Assembly: GCA_020891255.1 (NCBI GenBank)
Contig: BQFW01000011.1
Span: forward strand, 1,364,001 to 1,428,000
Direction: 5' to 3'
Source: Entomortierella parvispora E1425
Taxonomy: Eukaryota > Fungi > Mortierellomycota
Length of the DNA stretch: 64,000 nt
A program made the translations under genes and the position numbers. This document shows, one piece after another, positions 30,555 through 39,103 of the stretch; positions within the stretch are counted from its first letter, which is position 1; every line of letters starts with the position of its first letter. Below the pieces are notes generated by a model that ran no database searches, was not told the DNA's origin, and worked only from the letters and a program-made list of their open reading frames with translations.

Positions 30555-32238
30555 ACCCGTGTGAATAGATAGAAAAAAATTACTTTCTATACGTAGTTCG
30601 CAACCACTCAGACTATTGCTTTTCTCGATCTGGAGCGGTCATGACAATGCGATTCGAATCATGATACAGCGCTGGGTGCTAAGAGAGGGATTTGAGCGGC
30701 AGCGGTGTTCATAATGGTTCTTCTATCCTTTTACCTTTGTCCTTTGTCAACAAGAAGGAAGAGAAAAGAGAAATAACGGACAATAAGTATGGTTTGAAAC
30801 ACAAGTGAACGAACATTGTTGTGAAAAGCACGACTACGGGGTTTATCCTGCAGCATGACCAGAGCAACTCTGCGGAAGACAAGATTTTTGGTATTTATTA
30901 TCATCGTTGTACTTGGAGGAAGATGAGGAGTGCAAGGGGGAGAATACGTCAGCTTGTTTGCTATACATGTAATATTCTATTGAAATGAACAGGATGCTCC
31001 GCGTCTCCCTGCGCAAAGCATCCTGCTCTGGAGTCCGGACCCGATTGAACTTCGCCGACTCTGCGGTAAATTGCTGCATGCCGTCTTTCTAGCACCTCAG
31101 GCAGAAGAGGCTCTCATTGGCAGGAAGGACAGCTAGTGCGGGCGCGGACGCGTGATCTAGCAAACAAACACGAAGAATGTAAAAAAGGGGTATTGGGCGG
31201 GATCTCTCGCTGTTTTTTCTCTGCCCAGGTGATACGGTCGACTTGTTCAGCAAAGTGAGTACCTGCTCCAGCAAAATGCCCATCGTGCCTTGAGCTTTGA
31301 TGTCTGGCAATTCGAGAACGACATTATGACGACAATGCCATTGTTCAGAAACGAGAACTTGGCCGGACACTTCTCAAGGCGCCAAACCCTGGGTCTCTGA
31401 ATGAATTCGTCCCTCCCGAGTTTTTCAGTCATCTAAAAGAGATTTCAGAATGAGAGAGGATCAGAACTTTTGTATGGGTTTTGTTTGCTTGATCTTCAAG
31501 AAAAGGAAACAGCAAGAGAAGAATCGTTTACCTCTTCCGGCTCCTTCAAAATCATGGTCGGCCATGGAATGTGGAAATCTGATCCATTGATTGTAGAGTA
31601 TATAGCCTGAACCTTGCGGCAGATACACAATGGCTCTTTGAGGTCGAGTCCTTGTCAGGTGGGATGGTCTGGCCACGCTTGTCTTTGGTCACAAGGTTGG
31701 GCCAGTGCTGTTCAGCAAAGGTCTGTCCGGCGTTGACTCTTGTAGATATTTTTGACATCCTAGAGTCCTTATCCAGATCCAGAATGTATTTCCCTGAGGA
31801 GTTTCGCTTGTCTTCATAGGATGTGAGTGTTGTCGTCTATTGTCAACCAGGGAAACTAGTTGACGAAGCTCAGATCCAAAAAGTCGTATCCAAAATGCAG
31901 CCTGTCCACGTTGTCCTGCTCCTCTTCTTGGTCATAACCAAGTAGGAAAATAGGGAGTTAATAATCAATAGATGAGAATGCTGTTTCATGCGCAAGGGTA
32001 GTTTACCCGTACGTGCATACATGGGGATAGGTCCTTTCGCAAGAGAGTGAAAGTAGAGGCGCTGAACCGATACATCAACATGCTGGGGAAGCCAGGAAAC
32101 AAGGTCCTTTCACATAGAAGCAGGTGGAGAGGAAAAGGACAGGGCAAGTGGAAGAAGACAAATGAAGGGATGAAAAAGGGATGAAGAGATGAAGACAGGA
32201 TGGTGGTGATGGTGGTGATGGTGGCGAGTCGGTGAGAG

Positions 32239-32651
32239 CAGAGCCTCGGGCGGGGTGTGACTACGCTGTAAATTTTCATCCTTGCTGGTGGGCGTGCTTC
32301 AAAGCACGCCAGGGCGGCCACTCAAAACAAGACGAGCGTATCACACATTGACGACACAGCGCACCAGAGCAACCCAGATGGCGTTCCTGCATCTCCGACA
32401 TGGCGTACCTGCATCTCCGACATGGCGTACCTGCATCCCCGACATGGCGTACCTGCATCCCCGACATGGCGTACTTGCATTCCTGACATGGCGCACTTGC
32501 ATTCCCGACATTGGTGGGGCAACAATCCCGACATGGTGTCTCCCGTGCTACCAACTACGACCAGTTGCCACAGACAATATCATGCCGGCGATGGACCCTT
32601 TCTTTGCCCCTTTCATATTTTCTATCAACAATCAACAAGTACATTCATCGC
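32239..32651 (+). repeat. Left terminal inverted repeat (413 bp) with 6+ copies of 22-bp ATGGCGTACCTGCATC(T/C)CCGAC
   Basis: Reverse complement of 37617-38029. Tandem units start at 32378, 32400, 32422, 32444, 32466 and 32488. Confidence 0.95.
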
Positions 32652-32826
32652 TATTTGGACTTCAGGGATAGCATTTAAATGATTTTGACCGAGACTTATC
32701 AAATACGACGTTATTGCTGGCGAAGGATTTATTTCTGGATTGATCGAACTTGTTAGTTGAAGAAGGCTCCAGAAATGAAGAATGAACAACCAGTTTCATG
32801 AAATCATTATGTCACCAGTCTTCAAT

Positions 32827-33822
32827 CTATTCTCTTGGTTCCTCCTCAGATCTTTCTGGGTTCACACGTCGGTGTCCTTGAAGTCTCGTCGGTGCGTTGG
32901 TAGCGAGGGAATTAACTGCATGAATGGATGAATAGTTAGTTCCAGTGTAGATATTATCGAAATTATTTTCAGGGATGATGTTAACGTACATGGTTGCCGG
33001 ACAGTGGGACCACCCAACCTTGCCAATTGAAAAGAAAGTAATCGCTGACCGTCGTTCACTTCATGCCTCCAAGTTCTTACTTCATCCATAAAGGTATAGA
33101 CGGCTAGTGGTTCAGTGATAGAGCTCAATTAGTTTCAGCAATCAAGATTCTGATCATGTTCACGTCATGAGATGCAGTAGCGCACCTTCAACAAAAACTG
33201 GCATATTAACGATGTCGGGAATAGGAGCGCTGAGTTCGCGTGTTGCTGACGACTCTGACGAGGTCAATGGCTGCAAGGAGATCACTGGCTCTGAGGAGAT
33301 CACTGACTCGTTCAGAGTTGGGTTGGGAACAAAAGCAGGTGGTCTTTCCTCTCTGCGTTTTGCTTCAGAGGGACCAGCCTCAGATTTCTTTTTTTGGTGA
33401 TGAAGGCCAGAGGCTCTTATATTGGAGGGACCCGCACCTGAAAACCCCGCTCTGGAGGGGCCAGCGGTAGAAGTCCCCACGCCAGAGGGACTAGCAGCAG
33501 ATGCCCCCGTGGTGGAGGGGACAGTACCTGTGGCATTCATCATTCGGAACTGTTCCTTCACAGTAATGCAACTGTCGTAATGGCGCTTCACAGAGCCAGT
33601 GGATAGAATCCTTGCCCTTCTGCAGATGCAAGTAAAGAGTCCTATCTTCCTGTCGCGGTGGAAGGTAACTTGATTGCGGCTATGCCCACACGTAAATGTG
33701 AATGGCTCGTCAACATGGTGTGTTTTCCAGTGAAACTCGTCGTCCGGGGTAAAGTTCTCTCTATCTTCTTGAACTAGGCCCTGGCCGCAGACTTGGAAAG
33801 AGCAACTTGATGCTTTGGGCAT
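32827..33822 (-). CDS. Transposon cargo gene: putative Cys/His zinc-finger protein
   Basis: ATG 33822 MPKASSCSFQVC...HWKTHH...CICRRARILSTGSVKRHYDSC, then a low-complexity S/A/P region. A downstream intron is supported by GTACGT/CTAAC/CAG (~32990-32917). The junction near 33163-33124 is uncertain. Confidence 0.6.
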
Positions 33823-33918
33823 TATGATATGGTGATGAGGAATTGTGTGCGAAAAGGAAAAGAAAGAAGAAGAGAAAGCGGTACATGTACAGGGGTTCCT
33901 TACAAAAAATGGGTGGGA

Positions 33919-34240
33919 CAGCAAGATTGGCAAAGGGGGGGAGAGAAAGGGGGAGCAGTAAGATTGGCAAAAAGGGGAGCAGCAAAGTTGGCAAAATGGG
34001 GAGCAGCAAGATTGGCAAAGGGGGGAGAGAAAGGGGGAGCAGTAAGATTGGCAAAAAGGGGAGCAGCAAAGTTGGCAAAATGGGGAGCAGCAAGATTGGC
34101 AAAGGGGGGAGAGAAAGGGGGAGCAGTAAGATTGGCAAAAAGGGGAGCAGCAAAGTTGGCAAAATGGGGAGCAGCAAGATTAGCAAAAGGGGGAGCAGCA
34201 AGATTAGCAAAAGGGTTGCTGCAAGGTTGGCAAAAAGGGG
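33919..34240. repeat. ~84-bp higher-order tandem repeat (24+24+36 subunits around TTGGCAAA/GGGGAGCAG) inside the hAT element
   Basis: CAGCAAG recurs at 33919, 34004, 34088 and 34172, followed by degenerate 24-bp units. Confidence 0.92.
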
Positions 34241-34300
34241 AACAGAAAAGGTGGAGCACCAAGGTAAGGAAGACATTGAGTGGAGAGGCACTACTGTAGT

Positions 34301-37300
34301 TTATTGGCGGTGATAGTGGAAAGTTGGGTTCATATTTCTGCGCGCGTCGAGTTTGACAGCCTCATCAACAGCATGGATTTTTGTGATCTCGGGTATAGCT
34401 TTTGCAAAACTTCGAGCAAAAAGTACCGCCTGAAAGTTGTGGTCCGCCATGGAAGCTCTTTTCTTGTCAAGGATCAATCCTGCTTGACTGAATGCTCGCT
34501 CGGAATCGGATGAAGTTGCCTGAATGCATAGATATGACAGTGCAATAGAACACAGACTCATGAGAGATTCATTCGAACGATGCTGGAGCCAAAAGTCTTG
34601 AGGGCAATCCATGAACTTCTTCGTGTAGGCTTCGGACGAACAAAAGGCGCCGTAAACGTTAAGAGCTAGGAAGGCGTATCCTTGGCTATTTGCTCGGAGG
34701 ATCAGTCCCATGGTTTCATCCAGGAAAGGGTCGGGGTCGATTTCCTCCGCTTCTTTGTGTCGGCGAGTCAAGTGCTCGACAACCAGATTGCCGGCCAGTT
34801 CTTTCGCACGGTTCAAAAGACTCTTGCCGTCTATCTCTGTATCCATCAAGAATTTTGATGAGGCACAGGCTGGGTTGAAGTAAATGGCAAGGAGGATGGC
34901 GTCTGGGACGTTGGTCAATGGCCAGGACTCCTTGATCTGATAGTCCAGACTTCTGTGCAGGGCTCTGGCTTGAGGCGTAGTAAACGACTCAACAGCAGGG
35001 AGAATAGAGTAAGCGCGAGCGTAGACGTGAGAGAGTGTTGGCTTCGATGCGTGCCCAGCCCAATGGGTGAAATCTGCTGCTGGTTGCAACAAGGCGAGCA
35101 TCTCTCCAAGAGCGACAGCCTCGTCATCACAGAGCATCACCTCGCGTAATTCATTTGCTTTCATCTTCAGATCCCTTGTGCCACTCTCAAGATCGCAAAG
35201 GGAGGCAGTTATGGCAGGTAAGAGTTTGTGTACCCTTGCAGACATAGTGAACCATGAGTTCCATCGTGTTTTGTTGAAGGTCAAGAGGTTCCACTGCTTT
35301 CCATCGAAGTGGCGCTTCTGCTGCGAGTTGAGGATGTCCGTAGCTGCAGAACTCTCAGCGAAAACCGCAGAAATATCCTTGCACTTCTGAAAGATGGCGA
35401 AGACTGAGCTCTGTCGTTTGAGTGCGTTGTTGATACAAAGCTGTATCTTATGGGAGGCACAGGGAATCCATGCAATCGGCGCAACTTGGTTGTTGTAAAG
35501 AGTCATAGCCAATTTGACATTCGCACCCTGGTCTGTTGTAATGCCTGACACTCGGTTGTGTAAACCCCAATCACGGACAACGCGATCTGTAAACAATGTG
35601 TATAGCTGTTAGCGTCATAAATATCAGCTGCAACGAAACCTGACCCCTGGTTAAACCTACCCAAAGCGTCCATAATGTTGATAGCTGTTTGACGTCCATG
35701 AATGCGTTCCATGCCGATGATGAAGGAAACCATGCCAGATGACCTCGAAAAAAAATGACAGGTAATCCCGAGAAATTTCCTCCTATCACGACTACTCCAC
35801 CCGTCAAGAGTAAGCGAAACCTTGTCGAGTTGAGACGTGAGAAAGCTTTTGATAAACGTCTTGGCACTCTGCGTTGTGGCCTTGAGCCTCTTCTGGAGAG
35901 TAGGAATAGTCGGGATGGTAAAATGAGCGTTGAGGTCTCGGCAAAGCTTCTTCATTGAGGGGTGCGCAAGCTGGCTGAACGGCGCACCAGCCTCCGTGAC
36001 CAAACTCAAAAGATTGTCATGAAAGTCAAGGATATCCCGTTCAGTTGGCTTCCTCATGTTGCTTGCAATTTGTTCCTGGCGGACAACTTCGTACCTCGCC
36101 CCCAATGGCGCTGTTTCTCCAACAGCCTGAAGTACTTCCTCTCCTCGAACCATTTCTTGGTACTTCCGGAACTCGCTCAGAGCCAACCACAGGTCATTGT
36201 GTTCCTTGTTCATATGGCCGATCTTGCCAGTATTTCCACCAGTGCTGTATTCAGCGCCACAGATCTCCTCAGCCTCGCCACTCTCGCCAGACTTTGCGAC
36301 AACACACCGGTGTTTTAAAAATTTTGCTTTCCCGGGTCCAACAGCTGCGTCGTATCCTTCCAGGCGGACGAGGGTAAAGAAATGCATCAGGATACCAGTC
36401 TTGTTGGTACTTTTCTTAATGGGGACCCTTGCCAATACCTTCTGCGTTTCGGGGGCATTCTCACAGAGTTCTGATGGGGGGATAGTCCCAATCTCATAAG
36501 ATTCGTACGCCTTATACCACTCTTCAGTTGCGGGATGGCTTTCCCTGACTTTGATACGGAGCCGAGAAATTCGGTCCATTCGCTGGTCCATCAGTTGAGG
36601 AAGACTTCGAAGAGACAATGTATCCTCATTTTCCATGTTTTGTTCCTCAGAGACGTTGTCGATGGGCTGCTGGATTCGCGCTCGCCGTTCCAGGACATAT
36701 TTAGAGGGCGCTGGATATACGAGCTCAGGCTCAGGTGCTGAATTTGCGCGAACAAACGGCGGGGGAGCAGAGGTTGAAGCCGAAACAAGCGAGGTAGCGA
36801 CTGATCTCTTTCTTGGAAATACAGGAGTATGGATCGGAGGAACAGATGCCTAGTAAACGATAAAAAAGAAATGAAGCAAACAGAGTGAGTTTATGGTGGG
36901 ATCAGATGGATTTTGATCATATGTCCTATCATTGCTAAATTACGGGAAAATCATCCTCTCCGACATCTTCAGTTTCGGCATCTTTCGGTCTTTTTTGCGC
37001 GAGAGGCCCGGGTCGAGATTGACATTGCATCACCGTCCTTGGTGGAGGCACAGATTGACATTGCCTCCAGATCCTGGGATGAGGAAAAAAGCCCCCCACG
37101 CACATGTTAGTAGATATTCTTTTGGCACTATTCCTATCCACGGCAAACACTTACATGTTCATTGATGCGCAAGTGGTTTGGGAGTGAAGATTCGGTCAAC
37201 ATGGCAATCCTAATGTTCTCCTAAAATAAACGCTGCACGTTAGCGGAAGAGACGTTGAAGTGACATTCCAAGAGGTTATTTACCTCTTCGTTATCTTCGT

Positions 37301-37433
37301 TTTCGCTTTCACTATCTTCACTATCTGATGTCGTGGAAGACTCCCCGTCATCAGAGAGAAACTCTTCGGCCAGGTCACTGTTAGCCTCTTCAACGTATTC
37401 GTCGGCAAAGGGATCATAAGCTTCCACGGACAT
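34301..37433 (-). CDS. hAT transposase with BED-like finger and C-terminal dimerization domain (apparent 1-nt frameshift in a 5' exon)
   Basis: Inferred exons 37433-37284, 37220-37155, 37073-36944, 36849-35661, 35586-34301. Motifs C..C..H..H (BED-like), SLTLDGWSS, GITTDQGANVK, WIPCASHKIQL, KTRWNS and LCIQATSSDSERAFSQAGLILDKKRASM. Confidence 0.92.
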
Positions 37434-37616
37434 GGTCTTTACTGTGCAGAGTGATATGGAAAGGGTGTGTTGGTGGGAGCAGGGGTGAGAAGGGCGGACG
37501 ACGGCAGCACAGCTTTTTATACATCGCTTGAAATAGAGCCAGCATGGTGCAAAAATATCTCGAACTTCCGCTGGGAATGTTCATAAGTCTCCGACGGATA
37601 TTGCTGAATGAGCATG

Positions 37617-38029
37617 GCGATGAATGTACTTGTTGATTGTTGATAGAAAATATGAAAGGGGCAAAGAAAGGGTCCATCGCCGGCATGATATTGTCTGTGG
37701 CAACTGGTCGTAGTTGGTAGCACGGGAGACACCATGTCGGGATTGTTGCCCCACCAATGTCGGGAATGCAAGTGCGCCATGTCAGGAATGCAAGTACGCC
37801 ATGTCGGGGATGCAGGTACGCCATGTCGGGGATGCAGGTACGCCATGTCGGAGATGCAGGTACGCCATGTCGGAGATGCAGGAACGCCATCTGGGTTGCT
37901 CTGGTGCGCTGTGTCGTCAATGTGTGATACGCTCGTCTTGTTTTGAGTGGCCGCCCTGGCGTGCTTTGAAGCACGCCCACCAGCAAGGATGAAAATTTAC
38001 AGCGTAGTCACACCCCGCCCGAGGCTCTG
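37617..38029 (-). repeat. Right terminal inverted repeat (413 bp)
   Basis: Reverse complement of 32239-32651; no mismatches noticed by eye. Confidence 0.95.
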
Positions 38030-39103
38030 GGTGAGAGAGAAAAGGGGAAGCACGTGCATTTAGAGTTGGTGGCGGACGCGACTGGGAGTCTGGGACTGGG
38101 GGAAGCTCGGAGTGGAGCCAGACGCGTGGATTAAAAGGACAAAGTTGACGTGGATACTTGGCGGTGTTATGGCCAAAAGATACGGTGGCCAAAAGATAGG
38201 GAGCTCGACCCAGCTTGGACGAGGACATGCGCCTCTGCTCGCGAGAAATTCAAGAGGCAAAATGGAGGACCGCTTGGAGGAAGGTGGGACAATAAGAGAA
38301 AGTGTCAAGAGGAGGACGGGAGATGGAAGGTCCATGGAAGGTCCATTAGAGCATGGAGAGAGTCCAGGAGGCAGCAAGATGGAGGAAAGGAGGAAAGGAG
38401 GGAGGGAAGAAGAGATGGCACTCTACTCAGAAAAAGAAAGAGAGGAGAGAGAGGAGAGAGAGAGAGCGAAGGTCAAGAAAGAACAAAAAAATAAAGTAGG
38501 AGGTCCCTTGGGACGCGGTGGAGGGGCGATACTCGCTATACATGGGCCTGTCACGTCGATTTCACTCATACCATGTCCGCAGCAACTTGCTGGTTACAGT
38601 CTGTGGGATCAAGCACACATGTCAGCGTTCATAAAGTCCTTTCCGCGCGCGTGCCGCACGGCTACAACTACTTTTGCCATAAATATAAAAATTATGTTTT
38701 TTCATCCCCTTTATAGGCGTTTTTTGGGGACAACTTGCCCTTGCGGTACCAGGAGGTTTTTTGGTAAAATGATTTCAATCGAGGCATTTTGTGACTACCA
38801 AAGACAGAAAAAGTCAATGGTCGCACAATGCAGCACAAAAAAAAGAAGGCCGTTGTTGAGTGATTGGTGGCTTGTGGGTCTAAGCGAGATTCTCGTGGGT
38901 GTGAGAGGGAAGCACAGCTGTTGGAAGGATGAAACTGTGCACATATCGAGAGGGATCAACAGAATAAAGGCAGGGCCACGGGAAGACATGTTAGCCAAGC
39001 TGGAGAAGGAACAGGAACAGCAAGTCTTTTACGACTGGCTGAGGGACTGGAGAGCGAGCACTCGGGCCGAGAAACTTAGCCAGAAGCGGAGAAAGGAGCA
39101 ATT

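Follow-up and report, generated by a model that had tools for sequence, protein, structure and literature searches.

The 64-kb stretch of DNA analyzed here (the window) comes from the soil fungus Entomortierella parvispora E1425 and carries, at positions 32239 to 38029, a 5,791-bp transposable element of the hAT type. The element begins with CAGAGCC and ends with GGCTCTG, and the same 8-bp target site duplication (TSD), GGTGAGAG, abuts it on the left (32231 to 32238) and on the right (38030 to 38037). Its terminal inverted repeats (TIRs), at 32239 to 32654 on the plus strand and 37614 to 38029 on the minus strand, are 416 nt each and 100% complementary. Between them lie two genes on the minus strand, a spliced transposase gene and, downstream of it in the same orientation, a smaller gene that we call gene 2, with a tandem array between the two. 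When the surrounding 10 kb were scanned blindly for any 11-nt TIR accompanied by an 8-bp TSD, the element's own ends were the sole pair returned. A sequence-only reading of this DNA had placed CAG...CTG ends and an 8-bp TSD at the locus, and both were borne out; its claim of perfect 413-bp TIRs stood for the identity and fell for the length once the arms were aligned.

Two nearly identical copies, each with its own target site duplication

A DNA search of the whole host genome (38.9 Mb in 20 contigs) revealed a second full copy on another contig (G000:C15:28497-34199) with the identical end type. The second copy is flanked by its own 8-bp TSD, GCTGGGGG, unlike the GGTGAGAG of the first. The two copies are approximately 99.9% identical, with 3 substitutions in about 5.7 kb (~0.05% divergence) and 3 single-base insertions or deletions (indels), all of which fall in runs of A or T and none within the inferred coding exons; these indels may be long-read errors. 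Repeat numbers have also changed, by one 84/85-bp unit in the intergenic array and by 22-bp units in the ends. The two arms of copy 1 have five and five of the 22-bp repeat cores and those of copy 2 have four and six, and the arms of copy 2 differ additionally by a 1-bp indel. The exact identity of the arms is thus a property of copy 1 and is not fixed in the family. Because the copies are nearly identical, the family is very young, and because each copy has a distinct and perfect 8-bp TSD as well, recent hAT transposition is well supported. The sequence-only reading had proposed a recent insertion and had named further copies with different 8-bp TSDs as one way to check it; one such copy was found.

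The transposase

The transposase would be about 874 amino acids long, and its exons were searched one by one. The last exon (34301 to 35586, minus strand; 427 codons plus stop) contains the second catalytic Asp, the CxxH and RW motifs, an all-alpha insertion, the SER..FS motif, and the hAT dimerization domain. It matched Pfam Dimer_Tnp_hAT (PF05699) with an E value of 3.5e-9 and 36.8 bits, against a cut-off of 21.4, and gave a weak, partial match to DUF659. The same exon was aligned by phmmer to the Hermes transposase at the second catalytic Asp, CxxH, RW, and the Glu of the SER motif, the paired segments being TTDQGANV/VTDRGANV, CASH/CSSH, TRWNS, and SSDSERAFS/SSAASERTFS. The hAT motifs noted earlier from the letters were therefore confirmed by Pfam and by phmmer. 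The element belongs to the hAT superfamily, as judged from the 8-bp TSD, the dimerization domain, the catalytic motifs that align with Hermes, and the CAGAG ends. Those ends fit YARNG, the consensus of the hAT terminal motif, and the two TSDs (n = 2 only) fit poorly to nTnnnnAn (Ac) and nnnTAnnn (Buster).

Upstream of the last exon, a 74-nt intron (35587 to 35660, minus strand; GTAGGT...CTAAC...CAG), read from the sequence with the frame checked by hand, joins it in frame to the main 5' exon (35661 to 36849, minus strand; 396 codons). Within this exon lie a Cys/His patch and the first catalytic Asp in its DGW motif, the latter located by eye only. The open frame of the exon continues for 71 codons ahead of the ATG at 36636, to a TAG acceptor, and is conserved from about 36553 downstream with L040, a soil metagenome relative of 67% identity. 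Farther upstream lies a probable first coding exon of 50 acidic codons (37284 to 37433, minus strand), with its ATG at 37433 and a GTAAAT donor at 37283, that is conserved in L040 (721-888). There, a 67-nt intron links the acidic exon to the main exon. In the present element, the acidic exon may join the main exon in frame either directly or via a 66-nt micro-exon (37220 to 37155). At L040:1009-1011, within the conserved N-terminal part of the transposase, the TAT of the present element is replaced by an in-frame TGA, and the L040 copy is probably defective.

The closest transposase relatives in the protein collection are metagenomic fragments of at most 67% identity, and the far end of the range consists of ZBED1-like animal proteins; the relatives carry ZBED1-like Pfam families. 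A search for complete relatives yielded contigs that are too short to contain both ends or a second gene (3.7 kb for L040 and L068, 2.9 kb for L069). A further relative lies in the host genome itself (L036:3841-5660; G000:C8:635840-637659), with 39 to 43% amino acid identity and open frames. No TIR or TSD was detected around it, and it may be an immobilized or domesticated copy.

A structurally complete element could still be dead, with an inactive transposase, and could have moved only formerly or with the help of another element. Two observations weigh on that side. The genome holds just two full copies, so the element is not prolific, and Pfam detected no BED finger in the 396-amino-acid exon, where a Cys...Cys...His-x4-His patch of unusual spacing is visible by eye. 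Against a dead relic stand the ~0.05% substitution divergence between the copies, the perfect TSDs, and reading frames that are intact across about 874 codons with the catalytic motifs preserved. On balance, we regard the relic as improbable and a functional element as the better account.

Long symmetric ends

Each arm is built in three parts: about 113 bp of unique terminal DNA that includes a 20-bp palindrome, a 22-bp tandem array, and about 143 bp of inner DNA. The array of the left arm (32378 to 32511, plus strand) comprises 6.1 units with the core GACATGGCG, and that of the right arm lies at 37757 to 37890. Each arm has five occurrences of the core and the rest of the 64 kb has one, where 0.33 occurrences would be expected in the whole window (~30-fold enrichment). 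In the soil-metagenome relative L040, the motifs CAGAGGGCG and then CATGGCGGG are found at the matching place near its end. We infer that the 22-bp repeats are candidate transposase-binding sites of the subterminal kind that hATs normally carry.

The TIRs of hAT elements are usually quoted as 5 to 27 bp, and in ordinary hATs the subterminal repeats are present in non-identical form at the two ends. Short TIRs are thus typical of the superfamily, if not defining, and here they are replaced by arms of 416 nt at 100% identity. The "long TIR" would be an ordinary hAT end made symmetric, with the repeats embedded in a mirror-image duplication of the end region. One end of the element may at some point have been copied onto the other, and the arms would have stayed alike through their youth and through repair-templated copying. 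The description of the element as structurally atypical accordingly stands for the TIR length and only in part for the separate subterminal repeats, since the 22-bp array sits inside the long TIR. Isolated stretches that are 80 to 86% identical to the 22-bp-repeat part of the TIR are present at two other places in the genome (L013, G000:C9:4327-4513; L014, G000:C10:239193-239363); these may be remnants of old ends or arrays of independent origin.

Nor is the long-TIR design confined to this element. Another hAT family of the same genome (L037:634-6006; G000:C7) has CAG ends, GAAAAAAA as its 8-bp TSD, and a 10-bp tandem repeat inside TIRs of about 690 bp, and its transposase is 27% identical in amino acid sequence to the one described here. 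The design recurs in the E. parvispora genome, and the notion of an atypical lineage must be narrowed to that extent.

Perfect identity over 416 bp might also be produced by assembly or polishing, as short-read polishing can homogenize repeats and the assembly was built from Nanopore and HiSeq data (PMC8759367). Such an artifact is hardly credible in this case. Coverage was 409x with long reads (PMC8759367), and the unrelated L037 family has its ~690-bp TIRs at 98 to 99% identity. Moreover, the two copies lie on different contigs with a like end structure, yet they differ in their ends, by five and five versus four and six cores and by one substitution. These differences mean that the repeats were resolved individually, which speaks against an assembly artifact and leaves the symmetric arms as a real feature of copy 1.

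Gene 2 encodes a two-zinc domain protein

Gene 2 encodes 279 amino acids in three exons on the minus strand (33822 to 33186, 33103 to 32990, and 32915 to 32827 including the stop codon), as given by the exon matches to EMPS_10687; its introns are of the GT..AG type, with splice sites read from the sequence. EMPS_10687 is the annotated three-exon NCBI protein of copy 2, from an annotation that drew on RNA-seq-derived hints (PMC8759367), and a word-based search with gene 2 returned only this protein of the other element copy. The second gene proposed by the sequence-only reading is thus real. It is wholly internal to the element and ends 173 bp from the TIR. Gene 2 is separate from the transposase, because the transposase stops after a complete dimerization domain, because 478 bp of non-coding DNA lies between the two, and because residue 1 (Met-Pro-Lys/Arg) is already the start of the conserved domain, both in gene 2 and in the majority of its homologues. 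A possible origin of gene 2 as a paralogue of the N-terminal finger of its own transposase was rejected, as BLASTP showed no similarity (E 1.4).

The protein consists of an N-terminal two-zinc domain of about 95 amino acids, a low-complexity middle with a basic patch, and a short C-terminal part. The ligand positions C7, C12, H31, and H36 (CCHH) and C65, C67, H81, and C85 (CCHC) are at least 90% conserved among 45 homologues, and R56 is conserved as strongly as the ligands. Pfam has no family for gene 2, its paralogues, or the 45 family members. A profile search of 1.84 billion representatives found 86 relatives at E values of 1e-3 or below, with gene 2 itself at 6.7e-45. Among ten relatives looked up, all of those that are named are hypothetical proteins of Mortierellaceae, from the genera Entomortierella, Lunasporangiospora, Actinomortierella, Linnemannia, Dissophora, and Haplosporangium.

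A first AlphaFold2 (AF2) model, from 4 sequences, was poor (predicted local distance difference test [pLDDT] score of 46). The model from 45 sequences reached a pLDDT of 88 and consists of two helices, a small sheet, and a long helix. Less favorable to a defined molecular role, a fold search (Foldseek/PDB, VIA-wide) returned nothing above noise, the best match, at Z 3.4, being U1/matrin-type C2H2 zinc fingers. The gene 2 domain is therefore described as a two-zinc module without a close known fold that is probably nucleic acid binding.

Gene 2 and its array are probably tied to the hAT lineage

The DNA that separates the transposase stop from the gene 2 start contains a tandem array (33906 to 34262, minus strand) with 12 copies of TTTGCYAAYYTTRC in an 84-bp higher-order unit. 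All 12 are on the gene strand, with none elsewhere in the window, and the copy number of the array differs between the two copies of the element.

A relic hAT (L045:1264-2360; C15:36060-36880), 1.9 kb from copy 2, provides a comparison across a much greater distance. In order and orientation it matches the young element: a C-terminal fragment of the transposase is followed by a short tandem array with a 51-bp repeat and then by EMPS_10689, a paralogue of gene 2, the proteins being just 38 to 40% identical in amino acid sequence. The intergenic regions of the two share a motif, as indicated by a local alignment score of 30 versus a maximum of 26 in 200 shuffles, and each has a ATTTTTTG(T/A)AA box some 85 bp ahead of the ATG. 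Maximum-likelihood analysis places both hAT-borne gene 2 proteins in one clade, with support of 99/97, together with homologues from four other genera. The closest outside homologue, on the L072 contig (56% amino acid identity), has a tandem array upstream too, and an accessory zinc protein stands beside a motif array at four related loci in all. The order kept in L045 at 38 to 40% identity, the motif shared by the arrays, the hAT-borne clade, and the L072 array are the reasons for treating gene 2 as part of the biology of the element, and on these sequence comparisons it is probably not random cargo.

The alternative is that gene 2 is a host zinc finger gene that was picked up by the element and plays no role for it. 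The surrounding 5 to 8 kb contain no hAT transposase in the case of the Actinomortierella, Dissophora, and Linnemannia homologues, and one of those in Actinomortierella sits between host-like genes (SIL1-like and HEATR5-like). These cases indicate that the domain is not strictly transposon bound and could be captured cargo. Moreover, within the sequence available, the zinc domain was not found in other hATs of the genome or with the transposase relatives L069 (51% identity) and L036 (39%). Passive carriage would not lead one to expect, however, that gene order and a related upstream array survive in a relic at 38 to 40% protein identity, or that the hAT-borne copies form a clade of their own. 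In both young copies, the zinc ligands and the reading frame of gene 2 are intact and the sole coding difference is synonymous, and an unrelated Mutator-like element (MULE), described below, keeps a paralogue in at least 8 full copies and 3 deletion derivatives. We consider passive cargo rather unlikely and prefer a gene that serves the element.

One homologue in Linnemannia elongata (JAGSXK010000010.1) has another mobile element in its vicinity. An unrelated element of about 4.35 kb (L066:11073-15425), with TIRs of about 440 bp at 95 to 98% identity, lies 2 kb downstream of the gene 2 homologue; no transposase was recognized in it.

A Mutator-like element carries a paralogue of gene 2

The genome contains at least 12 additional copies of the gene 2 domain, within a 9.6-kb MULE (G000:C9:853741-863344; L067:7142 to L063:6845) that has TIRs of about 50 bp and a MULE transposase (PF10551; E 5e-20). 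The genome holds at least 8 full copies of this element, near-identical to one another (~100% by BLAST), plus the 3 deletion derivatives. The N-terminal zinc domain of its accessory gene is paralogous to that of the hAT gene 2, a link between the second gene of a hAT and the zinc domain gene of a MULE that is newly made here, and the tree points to an old split between them and not to a recent swap. Directly upstream of the MULE zinc domain gene are eleven 282-bp tandem repeats. Kinship of these repeats with the hAT intergenic array was considered and rejected, the sequences not being similar. The MULE also carries an open reading frame with a protease-like HW motif seen by eye, for which there was no Pfam match.

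Interpretation and significance

Taken together, these findings make it likely that the element is a young, structurally intact, and probably autonomous hAT cut-and-paste transposon with symmetric, motif-dense ends and an accessory factor encoded by gene 2. It has inserted at two or more sites by cut-and-paste, each insertion generating an 8-bp duplication, with the transposase presumably binding the 22-bp repeats of the arms. The gene 2 protein would be a nucleic acid-binding accessory factor, acting on DNA or RNA, that has been kept by the element lineage. Its most likely target would be a repeated motif of the element, in the intergenic array or in the TIR repeats, through which it might modulate expression or transposition.

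hAT elements are textbook one-gene, short-TIR transposons and have been a source of gene transfer tools and of domesticated genes. A lineage that is young and intact, has symmetric ends of 416 bp, and carries a conserved accessory gene shows that the hAT design is more flexible than is usually stated, and the near-identical pair of copies offers tractable material on what long symmetric ends do. That one small zinc domain family supplies the accessory gene of a hAT and of a Mutator element alike, with a tandem array in front of the gene in either case, points to a shared layer of transposon regulation in early-diverging fungi.

Comparison with known systems

In the literature, no description was found of hATs with TIRs of several hundred base pairs or with a conserved second gene; the databases Repbase and Dfam lay outside that search. 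The hATs of Mortierellomycotina are listed in a survey of DNA transposons in fungi, which gives no detail of their structure (PMC5751038).

Like the classical hATs Ac, hobo, Hermes, and Restless, the element has an 8-bp TSD, a Dimer_Tnp_hAT domain, Hermes-like D, CxxH, RW, and E motifs, and short repeated subterminal motifs, and the ends of hobo and Hermes begin with CAGAG as its own ends do. Unlike them, it has TIRs of 416 bp rather than roughly 10 to 30 bp, its two subterminal arrays mirror each other exactly where classical hATs have two different ends, it carries a conserved second gene that is preceded by an array of its own, and Pfam sees no BED finger. The L037 family shares with it the host genome, CAG ends, an 8-bp TSD, TIRs of several hundred base pairs holding tandem repeats, a size of about 5.4 to 5.8 kb, and young copies; it differs in having a distant transposase and in lacking the zinc domain of gene 2.

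Outside the superfamily, a precedent for the ends is Galileo, of the P superfamily, for which long TIRs with multiple transposase-binding sites are described within a superfamily of short-TIR elements (PMC3688188). Galileo belongs to another superfamily and is not known to have an accessory gene of the gene 2 kind. For the accessory gene, the nearest likeness is with the MuDR/VANDAL-type Mutators and the 9.6-kb MULE, whose ends are likewise long or structured and which also have an accessory gene next to the transposase gene and tandem arrays in non-coding DNA. They differ in transposase superfamily and TSD, and the array of the MULE is unrelated to that of the hAT, whereas its accessory protein has the same N-terminal zinc domain as gene 2.

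VANC, the accessory protein of the VANDAL elements of Arabidopsis, removes silencing and binds motifs that are often arranged in tandem (PMC5735166). The resemblance to the present element is an analogy only, drawn from layout alone. Extended as far as it will go, it would make gene 2 and its MULE paralogue a Mortierellaceae-specific family of transposon-encoded, sequence-specific zinc fingers, each binding the array beside its own gene and so sustaining transcription or evading silencing. Such a family would be a fungal counterpart of VANDAL and VANC used independently by two superfamilies, with the long TIRs reflecting the same strategy of multiplying binding sites. We think this extension unlikely as it stands, and the interest of the accessory family would grow if it proved true, as a regulatory or anti-silencing device shared between hAT and Mutator elements.

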